DNA of 64,000 nt from Octopus bimaculoides (GCF_001194135.2 NC_068997.1:49174502-49238501); one strand, 5' to 3'. Positions 4,788-36,781 are shown, numbered from the stretch's first letter. Numbers and translations: made by a program. The notes: a model not told the origin generated them from the sequence alone.

Positions 4788-5772
4788 GAGAAGAATCTGG
4801 ATGTGCGTATGATTCATTGTGGAATTCGCTATTGTGTCTGCCGACATACTCTTCCGTATGCAAACCATGCACAATTCTTTATAAATGACAATTATTTACA
4901 TTCAAAATATATTTATTCAAAATCTTTCTCTAGGCCACATTGTTGCAGAAATGAATTGAAGTTCCACATTTATTGAAACGGTAATTTTAGCTGATTATTT
5001 GGTATAAATAGGGGGGTTTTTTGGGGTGGGGGTAAGACAAAAAGTGATGTTTCCTTCTTCCGTTTGTTGATAAAAAAATGTACGCTTCATCAATTACAAT
5101 TAAGTGTGCGTCTGGAAAATATAGTCCCAGTGGATGTACTACGAATATATAGAAAATGTAATTGTGATAAACTGTTGAAATATTTCAGTTTAGACATAAG
5201 AAAAAATTACAAAGGCAGAAAAGAAAGGAAAAATCATTTAAGAAATAATTAAATTCACGGGAGGTTACTCTCGAAGCTTAAATAAGGTGATTAGAGTGAT
5301 CTCCCTTGATACGTTAGTCTGTATGTATTTTTTAATATTGTCTATATAAATGGTGGTAGAATTTCTGCCTTTCTTTTGTAATATTAACGTTTCGTCTGCT
5401 TCTTTCTCCGTCTCTCATACACACAGACACACAGATGCATGCACGATACGCTAAACATACACATGAACAGACAAACGTATAAATCGTGTTCCAGTGAATA
5501 TACTACGGATATATAGAAAAGATAATTGTTATCAATAAAACGATCAAATATTTCATTTGAGATTTAAACTAGAAAAATCTGAAAATAATAAATTTGGAGA
5601 TATTCAGGGTGAGTAACTCTGATGGTTGAAAGGATATAGAGTTCTCGCCCTTGATATGTATTATTTTTTTCTGTCTTTTATATTTTTTTTATTATATACC
5701 TACGATGGTGATAGCTTTCGGTTCTGGTTAACTCCGTATATTTCCTTTTTTATGGAAATAATTCTTCACATT

Positions 5773-5789
5773 CTCTCATTCTCTCTCTA

Positions 5790-5822
<33 letters not shown>

Positions 5823-5864
5823 TTCTCTTTCTCTCTCTCTCTCTCTCTCTTCCATCCTTTCTTC

Positions 5865-5922
<58 letters not shown>

Positions 5923-5953
5923 CTTTCTTTTTCTCTCTTTCTTAGTCTCTCTC

Positions 5954-5984
<31 letters not shown>

Positions 5985-6022
5985 CGCGTTCTCTCTCTTT
6001 CACTCTCTCTCTTTATTTCTTC

Positions 6023-6079
<57 letters not shown>

Positions 6080-6432
6080 TTTCTTTCTTCCTTTCTTTCT
6101 TTCCTTCTTTCTTTCACTCTCTCTCTCTTTCTTACTTCCTCTCTCTCTTTCTTTGTCTTTCTTTCATTCTTTCTTTCTTTCTTTCTTTCTTCCTTTCTTT
6201 CTTTGTTTCTGTCTTCCTTTCTTTCTTTCTTCCTTTCTTTCTTTCTTTCTTTCACTCTCTTTCTTTCTTTCTTCCTTTCTTTCTTTCTTTCTTTCTTTAT
6301 TTCTTTCTTTCTTTCTTTCTTTCTTTGTCTTTCTTTATTTCTTTCTTCCTTTCTTTCTTTCTTCCTTTCTTTCTTTCTTTCTTTCACTCTCTCTCTTTCT
6401 TACTTCCTCTCTCTCTTTCTTTCATTCTTTCG

Positions 6433-6463
<31 letters not shown>

Positions 6464-6606
6464 TTTCTTTCTTTGTTTCTGTCTTCCTTTCTTTCTTTCT
6501 TCCTTTCTTTCTTTCTTTCTTTCACTCTCTTTCTTTCTTTCTTTCTTTCTTTCTTTCACTCTCTTTCTTTCTTTCTTTCTTCCTTCCTTTCTTTCTTTCT
6601 TTCTTC

Positions 6607-6674
<68 letters not shown>
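5773..6674 (+). repeat. ~900-bp (CT)n/(CTTT)n polypyrimidine tract
   Basis: Almost exclusively C/T, with an internal ~165 bp duplication (~6112-6275 vs ~6381-6535). Confidence 0.95.
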
Positions 6675-6826
6675 ATAGCAATCTAGACCTTTACTTCAAC
6701 CCCCACCCCCGTACAACGTTTCAGTGTTTCTCTCTGTGCGTCGGACACTTCTTATCAACAAAAACAAAAACAACAACAACAACCACATCCCCCACTCTAC
6801 ATCGTCTTCCCCCTCCACCTTCATTG

Positions 6827-6980
6827 CTACACACATCTACTCCGGTGACGTTCCCCCACAGATATCATTTCCTCTCTCTGCCTCTTTGCTTTCACGTCAT
6901 ATTCAATTTCCTTCTTCCTGACAGATCTTGCATTCTGCTGGGTTTCTTCCAGAACTGAACCCGTGATCTTGCTGTTTGAG
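6827..6980 (-). CDS. Candidate terminal exon 4
   Basis: Acceptor TTTTTTTACTATATTTCTATACGCAG|, phase 2. Reads SNSKITGSVLEETQQNARSVRKKEIEYDVKAKRQREEMISVGERHRSRCV then TAG at 6829-6827. No strong donor precedes the stop. Confidence 0.55.
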
Positions 6981-7283
6981 CTGCGTATAGAAATATAGTA
7001 AAAAAACAGAAGACTATTATAAATATAAGATGTTTGGATGACAACGTATAAAACAAGGTAAAATGGAGACCACCTCCCCCTTGTGGGATGGAGTTAAAAA
7101 ATATTAGACAGAGAACACCACTGGAAAATGAGAAAACTAAAAGAAGCAGCACATATTCATGAGCACAACAACCTCCTAAGCAGACCGAGTGCAGATATGA
7201 ATAGCATATGGGAACCGGTACTAAGGAAGGATAGGAAAATATTAGATTTATAAGCCCTAAAATTCACTCCATAATTGCCCACA

Positions 7284-7342
7284 GCATACGTAGTGGTTAA
7301 GAGCACGGGCTACTAACCCCAAGATTCCGAGTTCGATTGCAA
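7284..7342 (+). mobile_element. Truncated tRNA-like SINE head (not a tRNA gene)
   Basis: A-box TAGTGGTTAAG and B-box GAGTTCGATT. No complete acceptor stem. Confidence 0.65.
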
Positions 7343-7362
7343 GCATGTATATACAGAGAAAG

Positions 7363-7431
<69 letters not shown>

Positions 7432-7514
7432 TAGATCGATAGATAGATAGATAGATAGCAGAATATTAAATAAAGTACGAGTAAGGCAGAAAAATGTAGC
7501 TGTAGGGTGGATAG

Positions 7515-8075
7515 ATTACAGGATGGCTTACGACAACGTCCCATACTGTTGGCTCTTGGAGTGTCTGAGAACGCCCAGAGTAAATGAGAAGAGAAACAAC
7601 TTCCTTGAGAAAGCAATAAGAGTGTGGGAAGTAGAACTGCCACGAGAAAAAGTGAGGGTGTTCAGTAAAGCTATTGGAATGGAACCTAGAGTAGATAAGT
7701 GCGCTGTTCTAATTATGAAGAGACCTAATCACAAAGAGAGCCTGGAAGATAAACTTTGATAGCATAAATTTATCACAAAACAACATTATTAGATCATTGT
7801 GGCGTAATGAGGGATACAAATATCTAGGAGTGCAGCAAAACGATAGTATAATGGAAGGAGAAACGAGAAGGAAAGTTACGAAAAAGTACAAGGAGAGAAA
7901 TAGGAAGGTGAGCAAAACAAAATTAAATGACGGGAACATTATTAAGGTCACAAATATATGGGGCTATGCCAGAATTGAAATCCTTTGCTCCCTTTCTGAA
8001 ATAGACAAAAGCTGAGCTACAGAACCAGGATACAAGAACGAGAAAGCTGCTCACATTACACAACGCATCCTCATT
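7515..8075 (+). mobile_element. Decayed R4/Dong-like non-LTR retrotransposon RT fragment
   Basis: Frameshifted peptides AYDNVPYCWLLECL, VRVFSKAIGMEPRVDKCAVLIMKR, EGYKYLGVQQND and KTKLNDGNIIKVTNIW resemble R4-clade RT motifs (AYDSVPHSW, DIGMEFGLDKCA, YKYLG, KLNGGNLIKAINTW). Confidence 0.8.
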
Positions 8076-8120
8076 CTCTATCACAGGTTCTGGTTTGTGT
8101 TCATACCACTTTAAATGTAT

Positions 8121-8256
8121 ACATATATGCAGTTATGCATACATGCATAGATATATGCAGTTATGCATACGTGCATACATATATGCAGTTGTGCATACAC
8201 GCATAAATATATGCAGTTATGCATACATGCATATATGCAGTTATGCATACATGCAT
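8121..8256 (+). repeat. 28-bp minisatellite, ~5 copies
   Basis: Unit ACATATATGCAGTTATGCATACATGCAT; the last copy is 24 bp. Confidence 0.9.
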
Positions 8257-8348
8257 ATATACATACATCAGCTGAAGACTCATTAAATACAGGGTTTAAA
8301 AGTATACAAAATTTTACAATAAAGATATGAGTAAATAATACAACTTAC

Positions 8349-8415
8349 TGGTTTTCCATCTGTTGGGTTGTCACACATTTTGTAATGCACTTCTTGGTAA
8401 TAACATCTTGTGTTT
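8349..8415 (-). CDS. Candidate exon 3
   Basis: 67 nt, phase 1 to 2. Acceptor TTCTCTCTTCTCCAG|, donor CCA|GTAAGT. Reads (E)TQDVITKKCITKCVTTQQMEN(H) in frame with exons 2 and 4. Confidence 0.6.
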
Positions 8416-8899
8416 CTGGAGAAGAGAGAATGGTGTCATCCGTCATCTTTGAGATTAAAACTTGTTCATGTATGAAGATATAGACCAGATGGTTCATTTG
8501 TAACTTCGTAACATTAGCATGACTTGGTAAATGACTTCTGCGCAGATTTTCGAAAACGAGAGAAACATTTGCTTGTTTCTTTACATTTACGTAGAATAAA
8601 TAATAATTGTTTTCTCTAAAAGAATTAACAAGTAAAAGAAGATGAAGTTTTCAGATGTGAGAGGGTGAACAAGATGATATTCGTTGTTGCGAGAATACCA
8701 TCGAAGCTTAGACTCAGTTTTCTAGTTTTGATAATATCTTTTATAATTAATTTTAGCTCTGTAGTTGAGATGGTGATACATCATTACCACATCTAGATCC
8801 ACTACAATCGCCGCCACCACTACCACCACCATCTTCTTTTGACATCTCTGTCTTTTAGCTAGCATGTGGTGAGGGATGATTTGAAAGGAACCATGGGTT

Positions 8900-9025
8900 G
8901 GAGGAATGCACCAAGCTCCAATATTTTGCCCTGTTTTCTAAGGCTGGATGCCCTTCCTAACACCGACAACATTACAGAGTACACTGGATGCTTTCCTGTG
9001 TCACAAGTACTAGCGAGTTCACCAT
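8900..9025 (+). mobile_element. SINE/LINE 3'-end fragment
   Basis: GGCTGGATGCCCTTCCTAAC motif, which I recognise from RTE-related retroposon tails. Confidence 0.5.
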
Positions 9026-9276
9026 GTTTTGTTCGCAACACTTATACCCGCTTCTGCAGGGTTGGATTACATTAGAGGGTGAATCAGTTTTAGGCTAGAT
9101 GATGAGAGCTGAAAGCACATAACAGGTTTCTTGCTGTAGAGAGAATACATATATACTTGTATTATACAAAAAGGGGCAGGAGTAAATGAAGTGGGGCTAA
9201 AAAGGGAGATAAAGATAGAATTGGCAAGATATCAAGATGGGCCCTGATATATATATATATATATATATATAACTAA

Positions 9277-9345
9277 AATGGGAACAAAAGCAGCCAAAGT
9301 TCTTGCAAACCTAGTAGTGGAGTATTGAATATTTACTATATATCA

Positions 9346-9407
<62 letters not shown>

Positions 9408-9690
9408 AACTACTACTACTACTACTACTACAGAATTATGAATACACATTTTACCAATTTATAGGAGAGAATTGAAACAAATATTTAGATGACTGCTTTA
9501 TCCTTTCGAATGAATGTATTTATAATACATCCGAATTTAAAAGACGCTTCAATAGAATAAATACAAACATTCAATTTAATGTGGAATACAGCAAAGAGAA
9601 AGTTTCGTGTTTTGGTATTTTAATTTTAAAATGTCGATGACCAAATTGAAAACGCGATCCATTTTCAATCCACAGATTCATTAAATAAAC
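9277..9690 (+). mobile_element. Decayed Penelope-like RT fragment split by a (TAC)n array
   Basis: MGTKAAKVLANL, then after the TAC array (~9345-9432) KYLDDCFIL...FNRINTNIQFNVEYSKEK, resembling the Penelope MGT..AP.YANL, RYLDDCFI and IKFTME motifs. Confidence 0.7.
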
Positions 9691-9870
9691 ACCCGCTGTG
9701 TGATGCAAATACCAGGGACCTTCAACTTGATGAACTTAAAAATATATTAGTCGAGTGACATTGTTAATCTTCACTGATAGATGATGATCTAAAACGTGCA
9801 AAGTGAATTGATGTCCAAACACCACGAGAAATAAAACGGAACAACACAACTAATTTTAAAATAATACCTC

Positions 9871-10019
9871 ATGTGTAGTAAGTAGCTTGCTTATCCACCG
9901 CATGGTTACGGATTCAGTTCCACTGCGTGACAACTTGGGCAAGTGTCTTCTACTATAGCCTCGGGATAACCAAAGCCTTGTGAGTGGATTTGGTAGATGG
10001 AAACTGAAAGAAGCCCGTC

Positions 10020-10051
<32 letters not shown>

Positions 10052-10250
10052 NNNNNNNNNNNNNNNNNNNNNNNNNNNNNNNNNNNTACGTATCCACAAA
10101 TTAGCGGTTCAGCAAAATAGACCGATAGAATAAGTATTAGGGTTACAAAGAATAAGTCCTGGGGTCGATTTCTTCGACTAAAGGCGGTGCTCCAGCTTGG
10201 CCGCAGTCAAATGACTGAAACAAGTAAAAGAATAAAAGAATAAAAGAATA
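9871..10250 (+). mobile_element. Composite tRNA-derived SINE family A/C, near full length
   Basis: tRNA-like head, CORE-like TTGGGCAAGTGTC, CAAAGCCTTGTGAGTGGATTTGG...GAAAGAAGCCCGTCG, internal (TA)n plus gap, 3' module TTAGCGGTTC...GGTGCTCCAGC..GGCCGCAGTC, tail (AAAGAATA)n. Confidence 0.85.
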
Positions 10251-10323
10251 TATGTGTGTGTATGCATGTCTATCTATGCATGTATATATAATTTTCGTAA
10301 GGGAAAGTCCTTTTATAACGTAC

Positions 10324-10617
10324 CTTTAAATTTTTTCCTCGCCTTCTTCTTACGTTTTAATTTCTTCCTTTTCTTCTTTGAACCTTTTAACTTCAGTGTG
10401 TGATTGTGGTGTATTTTATAGCGGACGGACGTCTGGTCTACATACAGTTTTTCGGACACGGTATCAGTTTTGTCTTGGGTATCCGGGTTGTAACTTTCTG
10501 TTAACTTACGGTTCATATACACCTGTCCTCTGTTTCCTGGCGAAAGATGTTCTTCGCGAATTCTGTTCGGCTCCCGACCGTTTTCTTTGCCATTCACTTT
10601 GAAATTCATTTTCTTAC
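10324..10617 (-). CDS. Candidate exon 2; hydrophilic with a Lys/Arg-rich tract
   Basis: 294 nt, phase 1 to 1. Acceptor TTTATTGCAG|, donor AAAG|GTACGT. Only one frame is open: GKKMNFKVNGKENGREPNRIREEHLSPG...KLKGSKKKRKKLKRKKKARKKFK. Non-repetitive sequence. Confidence 0.65.
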
Positions 10618-10692
10618 CTGCAATAAACAATTTGTATACATATATTTGTACACCACGTGACATGGAGTGTTTTGTTCAAGAACACAACGCAC

Positions 10693-10780
10693 CATATCGT
10701 CTCGAAATTGAAACCACGATCACTAGCAACACTAAACCATGCGCCATCCTGACTGTAACTGCCCGAAACAGTAAGGACAT
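10693..10780 (-). CDS. Candidate exon 1 of a 4-exon orphan gene; signal-peptide-like leader
   Basis: ATG at 10780 (second ATG at 10747) reads [29 protein letters not shown](G), with hydrophobic core [10 protein letters not shown]. Donor ATG|GTGCGT in phase 1, then a 75-nt intron ending TTGTTTATTGCAG. Confidence 0.55.
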
Positions 10781-10899
10781 CTGGTATCTTGACTGAACAC
10801 ACGAATGACCCGTCCTTTTTTCCCCCTGTTGTTTTTCCTGTCCGCTTTTGTATCGTCTATCAGTCCGAATGTTTTATTGTCCTTTATTGCGTTTTTGTT

Positions 10900-10937
<38 letters not shown>

Positions 10938-10992
10938 TAATATATATATGTGTGTGTGTGCGTGTGTGTGCGTGTGTGTGTGTGTATGTATG

Positions 10993-11029
<37 letters not shown>

Positions 11030-11377
11030 TTTATAAAGCATATTACTNNNNNNNNNNNNNNNNNNNNNNNNNNNNNNNNNNNNNNNNNNNNNNNNNNNNN
11101 NNNNNNNNNNNNNNNNNNNNNNNNNNNNNNNNNNNNNNNNNNNNNNNNNNNNNNNNNNNNNNNNNNNNNNNNNNNNNNNNNNNNNNNNNNNNNNNNNNNN
11201 NNNNNNNNNNNNNNNNNNNNNNNNNNNNNNNNNNNNNNNNNNNNNNNNNNNNNNNNNNNNNNNNNNNNNNNNNNNNNNNNNNNNNNNNNNNNNNNNNNNN
11301 NNNNNNNNNNNNNNNNNNNNNNNNNNNNNNNNNNNNNNNNNNNNNNNNNNNNNNNNNNNNNNNNNNNNNNNNNNNNN

Positions 11378-12803: not shown

Positions 12804-12914
12804 ACTGGATCACGTTTTTTTAAAAAAAATGTATCTGCATTATTCAATGTCCTTTCTTACTGTCAACACAAGGAAACATAAAAAAACAATAAACAATAAA
12901 CTGTAGTACTCAAT

Positions 12915-13125
12915 AGCAAAGGCATGTCGCACATGCGATTCCATTCACTCGGATCCCCTCAACATGCAAATCCCCGCTGCCCGATAACACATCTAGCAGC
13001 GGATCGGTTGCAATGTTAAAGAGGATCGGTGAGAGCGCGTCCCCTTGCCTAACACCCTGGCGAATCTCGATGGGTTCACTAACTTGTCCCCCGACTGAGA
13101 ATTTGGTAGCACTTTCTTCATAGAT
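12915..13125 (-). mobile_element. Non-LTR RT fragment, R2-like
   Basis: IYEESATKFSVGGQVSEPIEIRQGVRQGDALSPILFNIATDPLLDVL contains the RT motif GV.QGD.LSP.LFN. Confidence 0.85.
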
Positions 13126-13345
13126 CCCCTGCACACACATACACACACACACACACCCATACACACACGAAGGAGACGCAGAAAGAATTCTTTGGATTAC
13201 AGTTCAGTTTGATCAGAGCTTAACTCCAATTGAACAAATACAACAACAACGAGTGTACAGAAACAAACTGAGAAGTGAAAAAGTGGAGGGAGAGAGAGGG
13301 AGAGAGGGGGGAAAGAGAAAGAAAGAGAGAGAGAGGAAAAGAGAG

Positions 13346-15971: not shown

Positions 15972-16092
15972 GCAGCAGGCGTGTCTGTGTGGTAAGAAGC
16001 TTGCTTCCCAACCACATCTTTCCGGGTCGGGCCGACCAAAGCCTTGTGAGTGGATTTGAGAGACGGAAACTGAAAGAAGACCGTCGTATATA
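15972..16092 (+). mobile_element. SINE A/C 5' module with an internal deletion
   Basis: Head TGTGTGGTAAGAAGCTTGCTTCCCAACC joined directly to GGGCCGACCAAAGCCTTGTGAGTGGATTT...GAAAGAAGACCGTCG. Confidence 0.8.
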
Positions 16093-22063: not shown

Positions 22064-22748
22064 AGGTATACACCTGGTAAATTGCAGGTAAAGGTAGGGA
22101 AAAAGTCACAATTAATTTAAGGGATCCAGACAAAACCCCCTCAGATAACCCCGCCCCCGGACAAAACCCTTATGACTTATTTTCCTGTGACTTTTTTACT
22201 GGATTCTTTACACCATATTTCATTGTAAGGGTCAATGTTACTATCTAACCATTAGGGAACCCTTTGGTAAAATACAGTCTGTTACAAGCGTATCGGACAG
22301 GTCTCTGCTTTGAGGGTGACATTTTCCATTCCACTAAAAAGTCACGGGGATCCAGATAATGGATTAAGGGTGTTATCCTTTCCCTTCTGACCACAACATT
22401 AAGCGACAACACCAACAGCTGCAGCAGCAGCAGCAACAATAACACGAACAGCAAAATCCGCGACGACATAAAATACGATGAAGGCGTAAAAAGAGTTTGT
22501 GGATTCGGTCAACTTACAAGAATTTCGGAAACAGAAGTCGTCCTGTGAGATGACCTCAGCAATACTGGAGGCACATAGGATGATGATAAGGATGGTGATA
22601 GTGGTGGTGGTGTTGGTGAGAAGGAGAACGGCACGTGTTTGGTCGGACATGTTCACCGACTATCGATGATGTAACAAAGTAAGGCTCCGTCGGTTGAGCA
22701 AGGAGAACGGGCCGGACGTCCATGGCAGGAGTACCTGAAGAAACAAAG

Positions 22749-35045: not shown

Positions 35046-36781
35046 CATCAGGAAAGCTAACAAGAACAACAGCAAGTGGTGTCGTTGTTGCCGTTCATTA
35101 TAATGCGATTTATGTGCGTGTGATTGGCTCTGTTTATTTTCCAAGTGAAAGAAGAGAGAGAGGAGGGAGAGAAAGACAAAAAAGACATAGGGAGAGAGAG
35201 AGAAAGACAGAGAAAGGGAGAGAGAAAGAAAGTGAGGGAGAGACAGAGAGAAGCCATTCATCAGCATCAAACACCGAATTCTAACTCCCACACACCAATG
35301 TGTTTTTCGTTAGTGTAACCTACATCAATGATTTGTTATTTTTGTTTTACCAATGTATCTATGTATTTACATCTACAGCTCAATATATGTGTTATGGACT
35401 CATATACGTACATACATACATATCTATCAATTTATACGTATATATATATATATATATACATATATATATACGCATTCACATACATACATGCATACACACA
35501 TGTATTTCTTTTGCTTTCCTTTTATATATGATTCTCGCCTTGGACAGAAGATTATACAGCGTTGCAGCGAAAAATATATATAACTAACAAAATGAGCGAT
35601 GACATTTTCTAGAAACTTAATTCCATCTCTTCATTTCGACTTTGAGGGTTGTGGGATGTTTTATTTTACTTAATCAATTATGTTTTAGAAACCCAGCTAC
35701 CAAATAACGGCCTCGCTCATAAATCTGTAAAATTATGAATGGTCCATAAGAAATATGTTTGGTAAGTTTATAGGCTTGACCTGATCCTATCTGTGTTTCT
35801 TAGAGGTCAGACAATCGTGTTTTTTTTTTCAAAAGTAAGACAAGCATTTCTTTCTTTAGAATGATAAAATCTTAAACAAAGAAGGCCATTAGATAACAAA
35901 CGCTTCAACATTAAACTCGTCAACAAAGGCGAAACAAAGAACAAGGATCGATATTATCGACCCAAAAAGGAAACAAAATAAAACACATTGAATCAGTGCT
36001 CCAATATGGCCACAGTCTAAAAGCTGAAGATGAAACTAGTTAATGAATAAACGATAAGGAATAAATTTAACAGCAGTTCAGTCAAGTAGATCCTATAATT
36101 TACTTTAAACATACGGGGATGTGAATGTATATGCGTTAGTAAACGTGTGTTTGTCTGAGCATCCATTTTTGTTTTGACCACGAGTGTCTGCGCGAGCGCG
36201 TATCTGTGAGTCTTTCTGTGTGAGTGTATGGATATGTGTGCGGCAATGTCCAAAGAAAAAAATATAAAATAAAAAGAAACTAAACAAACTTCAAGACTAT
36301 ATTTAGCGTACGTCCATTTTGCATTTCTGTGGGCATACAGCATCTTCCTCACTGCAAAATGCTTCGAAGGAAATGGTTGTTAAAAATTTATGGCTGGCCT
36401 CATACCAAATATTAGGGTGGTACCTGCTTTAAATATTATCGCCCTCCCTCACTAAAAATTATTGTTTCTTCCCAGTGAAATATTATGTGAGCTACCATCG
36501 AAAGTTAATGGGCACTCTCTCAAAAAATTAGCATATCTGATGGCTTACAATTCGCACGTATTTTCCAACAAATGTCTCATAAAATCTAATTGATTCCTAT
36601 AAAGACAACTTCAGGATTTATGTTACTGCATGCGGTTGTGCAAAAATAAAATTCAGCCAAAATTGCGGTGCGTGCATTATATAAGCCCGTGTACCATATA
36701 ATACATTACTTAGGTTGCTGCTTTTCTTCAGAGTGGAGATATATTTCAATTAAAAATGAAACTTATGTTAAACCCTTGTAA

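Follow-up and report, generated by a model that had tools for sequence, protein, structure and literature searches.

The stretch of Octopus bimaculoides DNA considered here (GCF_001194135.2 NC_068997.1:49174502-49238501; 64,000 nt, in the following the window, with positions counted from its first letter) carries on its minus strand LOC106881492, a gene with four coding exons for a protein of 215 amino acids (aa). The gene model is already known, and the family it represents is uncharacterised and lineage-restricted. An original prediction, made from the sequence alone, had described part of this locus as an unannotated gene peculiar to the species, in which four segments (10780-10693, 10617-10324, 8415-8349 and 6980-6827) were proposed to code for a secreted, highly basic protein of about 200 aa. 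These segments can be joined as described, with AG/GT borders and intron phases of 1, 1 and 2, into a 603-nt stop-free frame ending in TAG, and the spliced protein-coding gene is real: exons 2 to 4 (10617-10324, 8415-8349 and 6980-6827) coincide with RefSeq LOC106881492 to the base, phases included. What had been seen is the downstream three quarters of this annotated gene.

When the proposed 200-aa product was used as query in a protein search, the 215-aa “uncharacterized protein LOC106881492” of O. bimaculoides was among the matches. The RefSeq protein (XP_014787381.1 / XP_052829983.1) is identical to the proposed product from KKMNF through the C-terminus, corresponding to exons 2-4, so that the two agree only from residue 46 of the RefSeq protein onwards; its N-terminus is a different one and begins MSDQTRAVLLLTNTTTTITILIIILCASSIAEVISQDDFCFRNSC. 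A tblastn search placed the true exon 1, with 100% identity, at 22650-22518, about 12 kb upstream, from where it joins the same acceptor (10618/10617) that had been proposed for the segment at 10780-10693. The rebuilt coding sequence (CDS; 22650-22518 + 10617-10324 + 8415-8349 + 6980-6827) has 648 nt, and its translation is exactly XP_014787381.1 / XP_052829983.1; an identical 215-aa protein is also present in EukProt. The window lies in reverse orientation at about 49.18-49.20 Mb on chromosome CM046617.1 of GCA_001194135.2: from 24650 onwards its reverse complement agrees exactly with CM046617.1:49179328-49199151, and the gene as annotated spans 15,824 nt, which corresponds to window positions 22650-6827. 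We regard the corrected four-exon structure as almost certainly right. Its elements, all on the minus strand, are the following.

22723-22556, minus strand: upstream ATG with an out-of-frame upstream open reading frame (uORF) of 55 codons that overlaps the main start codon
22650-22518, minus strand: true coding exon 1, 133 nt, with ATG at 22650, donor GTAAGT and phase 1 (tblastn and direct reading); its product is MSDQTRAVLLLTNTTTTITILIIILCASSIAEVISQDDFCFRNS plus the first base of Cys45
22650-22564, minus strand: predicted signal peptide, residues 1-29, with the putative cleavage after CASS (by inspection)
22517-10618, minus strand: intron 1, 11.9 kb, with four assembly gaps, repeats, a reverse-transcriptase fragment and the rejected first exon
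10617-10324, minus strand: coding exon 2, 294 nt, phase 1 in and out, with the NRIREE motif and the polybasic tract; identical to RefSeq
10384-10325, minus strand: Lys/Arg tract of 20 codons, GSKKKRKKLKRKKKARKKFK (residues 123-142), with the same residues in Octopus and Argonauta
10323-8416, minus strand: intron 2, which holds the assembly gap 10052-10086
8415-8349, minus strand: coding exon 3, 67 nt, phase 1 in and phase 2 out; with its flanks 97% identical in O. sinensis
8348-6981, minus strand: intron 3, between coding exons 3 and 4
6980-6827, minus strand: coding exon 4, 151 nt plus the TAG stop at 6829-6827

The segment at 10780-10693, which had been taken for the first exon, is a chance ATG...GT open frame within intron 1, 75 nt upstream of exon 2. 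It is used in no annotation of any species and carried by no orthologous protein, and in every orthologue a different sequence precedes the KKMNF... junction. The comparison with O. sinensis separates the two candidate exons clearly. The rejected segment differs at 6 of its 88 nt, with five of the changes non-synonymous and one synonymous; its region is 92.7% identical, a divergence at the level of the intron blocks (88-93%). The true exon 1 differs at 2 of 133 nt, both synonymous, and has a counterpart in Argonauta, where none is detectable for the rejected segment. That a signal-peptide-like exon was proposed at this place lies within chance expectation, as the 10.75 kb of intron 1 that have been read contain 40 ATGs from which a frame continues without a stop for 60 nt or more up to an in-phase GT, and 15 of these 40 candidates carry a strongly hydrophobic stretch of 10 residues. 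It could be argued that a transcript starting at 10780 nevertheless uses this segment, at least as an alternative first exon, because its frame, ATG and GT donor are intact in both O. bimaculoides and O. sinensis and because it would be spliced to a real acceptor. We consider this very unlikely in view of the intron-like divergence, the forty comparable chance candidates and the lack of a counterpart in Argonauta or upstream of exon 2 in an intron-retaining transcript contig of a relative (see below). A hydrophobic N-terminal leader does exist, so that this part of the original prediction was sound; the leader peptide itself and the exon that had been given for it were wrong. Likewise, the suggestion that the four segments might be part of a larger gene was right in the sense that the gene reaches 12 kb further upstream.

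The gene is not confined to one species. Orthologues were identified in O. sinensis (LOC115221115, XP_029647188.1), in O. vulgaris (a hypothetical protein), in Argonauta hians (Ahia01_001215000) and in one further transcriptome, a Logan assembly of an SRA run. Isoform X1 of O. sinensis LOC115221115 (213 aa) has the same four exons, GT-AG borders with phases 1, 1 and 2, and an uninterrupted open reading frame (ORF); a single contig without gaps carries both exon 1 and exon 2, and their orientation is the same. In A. hians the four orthologous GT-AG sites are present with phases 1, 1 and 2, and when they are joined, three exons of 211, 300 and 244 nt together with a terminal exon form an ORF that is again uninterrupted. 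Neither frameshifts nor lost splice sites were thus met in these two species, where their presence would have spoken against the gene. The Argonauta leader contains a Thr-rich run of about 27 residues, and its exon 3 (244 nt) a Thr/Pro-rich, mucin-like insertion of about 60 residues; both appear to have arisen by expansion of ACN/CCN repeats. The C-terminal ...G.RHRSRC is common to O. bimaculoides and Argonauta.

Transcripts are available from a relative in the form of Logan contigs (SRA runs SRR8281668, SRR8281677, SRR8281672 and SRR8281674). Contigs from three of the runs have exon 1 fused to exon 2 in a single ORF of 144 codons, while the contig from the fourth retains the 3' end of intron 1 (...ttctcttcag|GTAAC...), and the spliced and the intron-retaining forms part exactly at the Cys codon that is split by the intron. 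The exon 1/2 junction and its phase are thereby documented directly in transcripts of that relative. The 236-aa and 221-aa “proteins” reported for Logan contigs read through a TGA, and the true product has 144 aa. The Logan transcript, which comes from the most distant relative, ends 17 codons past the basic tract and lacks any counterpart of exons 3-4; in O. bimaculoides, where exon 2 sits in a 116-codon genomic ORF, an unspliced exon 2 would meet a stop three codons past its donor. The C-terminal exons may be an octopod addition to an ancestral two-exon gene.

Several of the public models for this family need revision. The entry Ahia01_001215000 (BAAFZT010000080.1; locus sequence 5845-11035) is partial and switches frame after exon 2. 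The O. vulgaris model, with an annotated range of about 158 kb, takes its N-terminus from the conserved 5' leader (window 22655-22735, minus strand) read in a third frame and omits the signal-peptide part of exon 1 together with part of exon 2; it is probably a mis-prediction. Isoform X2 of O. sinensis (177 aa) enters exon 4 about 14 nt early (window 6981-6994, minus strand; O. sinensis locus ~36328-36341), which shifts the frame to an end reading ...QFLYAAQTARSRVQF. This isoform is doubtful, as the dinucleotide before the entry point is not AG-like in either species.

A profile search with HMMER, run without an index against 1.84 billion representative proteins, returned only three clusters, all of this family, and as far as this exhaustive profile search reaches the gene is restricted to cephalopods. 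Word-index protein searches, with the family alignment as well as with an N-terminal-only alignment, gave the same five clusters among the matches listed; their candidate lists were probably filled by poly-Lys and poly-Thr words. The statement that the product matches no known family also holds: Pfam gave sub-threshold noise only (SepSecS, E 0.02; ALMT), and the best hit of a profile search of the PDB was not significant (E 0.11). Nothing relevant was found in the searchable literature under the LOC identifiers or the CFRNSC motif.

The selective regime differs sharply along the gene. Between O. bimaculoides and O. sinensis, omega (dN/dS by Nei-Gojobori) is 0.315 for the whole CDS (10 non-synonymous and 8 synonymous changes), 0 for exon 1 (0 and 2), 0.09 for exon 2 (2 and 5) and about 2 for exons 3+4, where the counts are small (8 and 1). 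In this dN/dS comparison, which the original prediction had suggested, the true exons 1 and 2 are constrained, and the proposed first exon behaves like an intron. Between Octopus and Argonauta synonymous sites are approximately saturated; omega for the region between the leader and the basic tract is about 0.26, and the 20-codon tract shows 10 synonymous differences and not a single non-synonymous one. In the Logan orthologue the tract is kept apart from one deleted Lys and one change from Phe to Asn. Exons 3-4 retain an open frame and their splice sites in both Octopus and Argonauta, but are fast-evolving. The last Cys is Phe in O. sinensis and O. vulgaris. Purifying selection acts on the N-terminal two thirds of the protein.

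The conserved core, as delimited by the alignment, consists of the hydrophobic leader, a DD[FY]C[FY]RNSC loop (Cys-x4-Cys), an NRIREE motif and the 20-residue Lys/Arg tract. Family-invariant columns include V33, I34, D37, D38, C40, R42, N43, S44, C45, N62-E67 (NRIREE) and R81-L83, as well as nearly all of residues 123-142. The conserved Cys pair is C40-x4-C45 within the DDFCFRNSC loop of O. bimaculoides and is mostly encoded by the true exon 1. The features that had been singled out further downstream are not the conserved ones: in Argonauta the CxxxC pair of exon 3 is replaced by CITRS, and an RSVR site is missing. The residues right after the Cys loop are KK in Octopus, DR in Argonauta and NK in the Logan orthologue, and K[AL]KR near the C-terminus is the only putative cleavage site common to Octopus and Argonauta.

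Conservation extends upstream of the main start codon. The upstream ATG lies 73 nt before it in a strong context (GCCATGG), and the position of the uORF is conserved in O. sinensis (locus ~1928-2095) and in Argonauta (locus ~5772-6008). A block of 23 nt, GCTCAACCGACGGAGCCTTAC, is identical in all three species despite the saturation of synonymous sites. We suggest that a conserved ...ttcag|G just upstream is the end of an intron in the 5' untranslated region, and that the uORF may serve the translational control of the gene.

The surroundings of the gene are a gap-rich draft, with 28 runs of N that make up 18% of the bases in the window. One run (10052-10086) falls inside intron 2 (10323-8416), so that the reading frame is unaffected. 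The gap is embedded in a repeat:

10250-9880, minus strand: SINE-like (short interspersed element-like) repeat around the gap, with a left arm at 10250-10090, a right arm at 10020-9880 and a microsatellite spacer that holds the gap

Two further copies (42430-42806 and 48111-48529, both plus strand) show the same two arms in the same order and orientation, with microsatellite-rich spacers of 145-190 nt. The two sides of the gap thus look continuous. The gap is the unread microsatellite spacer of a single repeat, and its true length is probably somewhat greater than the nominal 35 nt. In the O. sinensis locus, which is free of any N, exon 2, collinear intron blocks and exon 3 follow each other in the same order and orientation. 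Further fragments of the repeat family occur at 16027-16086 and 52458-52539, and the assembly gaps tend toward spacers of this repeat.

Possible traces of retroelements occur in two introns. An ORF fragment in intron 1 (12910-13164, minus strand) resembles a reverse transcriptase, although the match to RVT_1 (E 1.3e-4) does not reach the Pfam cut-off, and in intron 3 two ORFs at 7523-8015 (plus strand) look by eye like remnants of the reverse transcriptase of long interspersed elements, with no significant Pfam match. Just downstream of the stop codon lies a long low-complexity block of the (GAA/AAG)n type (5626-6690), in which spurious ORFs, rich in K/E/R or in S/F/L and as long as 350 codons, arise on both strands; the same kind of block is found downstream of the O. 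sinensis gene. A weak similarity to the end of exon 1 at 57823-57915 (minus strand; ...EDYFCKSFVRNS...; tblastn E 0.36 within the window) is probably due to chance, and no exon-2-like continuation follows it. The 64-kb window contains no other convincing protein-coding ORF and no Rfam family.

That the product is highly basic, as had been predicted, is confirmed for the corrected protein: the mature form (residues 30-215) has a calculated mass of 21.9 kDa, a pI of 9.99, a net charge of +23 and a grand average of hydropathy of -1.33, and 15 of the 20 residues at 123-142 are Lys or Arg. AlphaFold, run with a four-sequence alignment, gave a mean pLDDT (predicted local distance difference test) of 54.8 and a predicted template modelling score of 0.20, with residues 42-119 below a pLDDT of 50. 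The models point to a largely disordered protein in which only the basic tract is predicted with confidence, as a helix (block pLDDT 78-92).

The leader has a pronounced hydrophobic core (maximum 10-residue Kyte-Doolittle mean of 3.37), and by inspection all orthologues possess a hydrophobic leader, in which positions -3 and -1 are occupied by small residues in all three lineages. In the Logan orthologue it is short and canonical, with a six-residue N-terminal region, about 13 hydrophobic residues and then V-G-A. In the family's leader the hydrophobic core is followed on its C-terminal side by acidic residues, which according to the positive-inside rule favours a lumenal C-terminus. The mucin-like Thr/Pro insertion in exon 3 of Argonauta also fits an extracellular protein. 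Judged from these sequence features, the protein is probably secreted.

Of several possible explanations for this combination of features, we favour a secreted cationic protein whose basic tract binds a polyanion or another acidic partner. The leader would be cleaved as a signal peptide at about Ser29/Ile30, and C40 and C45 would close a six-residue disulfide ring near the mature N-terminus. A disordered protein with a pI of about 10 would then be released, the basic helix being its working surface, and this helix would dock on a polyanionic or acidic partner, for which either a specific acidic receptor or sulfated glycans at the cell surface or in the matrix may be considered. As the exact order of Lys and Arg is frozen, and not the charge only, a specific acidic partner or the binding of a defined sulfated glycan is favoured over a generic effect of charge. 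We propose only tentatively that binding of this kind is the main activity of the protein. Taken as a whole, this reading, which joins the corrected annotated gene to a proposed secreted cationic protein with binding as its tentative part, appears to us likely.

Several points weigh against this interpretation. The hydrophobic core in Argonauta lies behind about 45 residues, mostly Thr, and such an N-terminal stretch is long for a cleaved signal peptide. We infer the binding of polyanions from composition alone, and the tract, which holds the core of a classical monopartite nuclear localisation signal of the SV40 large-T type (a lead only) along with many convertase-type sites, may have other uses. 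The omega of about 2 for exons 3+4 is based on just 8 non-synonymous changes and 1 synonymous change. Finally, the searched protein collection contains no transcriptome-derived copy of the Octopus protein, so that the splice junctions in Octopus rest on annotation and conservation.

Processing to smaller peptides is one such alternative use, with the protein entering the regulated secretory pathway as a prohormone or neuropeptide precursor from which furin-type or other prohormone convertase-type cuts at the tract and at other basic sites would free an N-terminal Cys-loop peptide and C-terminal peptides as the active products. A small, disordered product with a hydrophobic leader, a variable spacer between conserved blocks and abundant basic sites, such as K[AL]KR close to the C-terminal end in both Octopus and Argonauta or the KK that follows the Cys loop in Octopus, would be in line with this, and a prohormone-like role had indeed been among the earlier suggestions. 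It is weakened by the basic site after the Cys loop, which is not conserved, and by the loss of RSVR in Argonauta; nor does the alignment show, by inspection, a conserved Gly-basic amidation signal. The precursor would be basic throughout, without acidic spacers, and a mere cleavage site would allow exchanges of Lys and Arg as well as changes in length, whereas the 20-residue tract is frozen residue by residue. We therefore consider a precursor unlikely. A protein that is not secreted at all, with the N-terminal segment an uncleaved anchor or non-functional and the tract acting as a nuclear or nucleolar signal or as an intracellular binder of nucleic acid or acidic lipids, would account for the long Thr-rich region ahead of the hydrophobic core in Argonauta and for the TNTTTT run that breaks the leader of O. 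bimaculoides. Such a protein would not be expected to show the short, signal-peptide-like leader of the Logan orthologue, acidic residues on the C-terminal side of the core, two conserved cysteines just past the leader or a mucin-like insertion suited to the secretory pathway, and we judge this alternative decidedly improbable. Nuclear proteins of the class that lacks a leader for targeting to the endoplasmic reticulum are a poor match in any case, as a hydrophobic leader is found in every orthologue.

It is extremely unlikely that the gene is an annotation artefact, a pseudogene or a function-less ORF derived from a transposable element (TE). A low-complexity product without a known domain, encoded in a repeat-rich region and lacking an Octopus transcript-derived protein in the collection, may raise this suspicion. 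However, the ORF, splice sites and phases are kept from Octopus to Argonauta, purifying selection acts on exons 1-2 as well as on the basic tract, and the related species has spliced mRNA contigs in three runs besides the intron-1-retaining contig in the fourth. Moreover, all exons are single copy and without a Pfam domain, so that the match to a TE envisaged in the original prediction as a point against the gene was not encountered; for exons 2-4, this absence of additional copies and of TE-like character applies to the window and to the 38-kb O. sinensis locus, and a TE protein domain was not found in Pfam, which sets them apart from TE-derived ORFs.

Among known systems, the secreted cationic protein favoured here would work most like secreted factors with polybasic glycan-binding tails, a resemblance and not a homology. 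Polybasic tails that bind glycosaminoglycans, such as the long, basic C-terminal ends that certain chemokines and growth factors have in some isoforms, define a functional class rather than a homology family. With these factors LOC106881492 shares a dense Lys/Arg cluster (15/20) after a predicted signal peptide, an unstructured region and a strongly cationic protein as a whole, while the Pfam, HMMER and PDB searches gave no sequence or fold relationship. It also differs from them in that the octopod basic tract is internal and the most conserved element of the protein, in contrast to an isoform-specific appendix.

The Cys loop is reminiscent of peptides of the vasopressin/oxytocin type (cephalotocin, octopressin), which likewise have a six-residue Cys-x4-Cys ring near the mature start with an aromatic residue, Arg and Asn inside. 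The ring of LOC106881492, however, is not at mature residue 1, being preceded by 6-10 residues depending on the assumed cleavage site; it is directly followed by KK, DR or NK, a basic site that is not conserved, and the protein has neither a Pro-x-Gly amidation tail nor a neurophysin domain (no Pfam match above the cut-off). Ring position, tail and neurophysin all speak against membership in this group. With neuropeptide and prohormone precursors in general the protein has in common that it is small, starts with a leader peptide, contains many basic sites and shows blocks of conserved sequence set apart by spacers that vary. It departs from them in that the sites flanking the blocks are not conserved, Gly-basic amidation signals are lacking and the spacers are basic and not acidic, and it was not assigned to this class either.

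As a discovery the present analysis adds little, since the gene is already in RefSeq; sound as it is, it belongs to a large number of cephalopod-specific genes that are uncharacterised. The gain is that a wrong first exon has been replaced, that faulty public models in Argonauta and O. vulgaris have been flagged, and that the conserved features of a lineage-restricted family have been defined, namely the Cys-x4-Cys loop, the NRIREE motif and a strongly constrained basic tract. A more far-reaching idea, which we consider quite unlikely at present, is that helix, Cys loop and NRIREE together make up a new cephalopod-only secreted ligand or matrix-bound factor, with a specific acidic receptor, uORF-gated translation and fast-evolving C-terminal exons added in octopods. 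If the protein turns out to be secreted and to act as a signal or matrix-binding factor peculiar to cephalopods, its gene would join those taxon-restricted genes for secreted products that may underlie cephalopod novelties, and would offer a simple, testable functional core.

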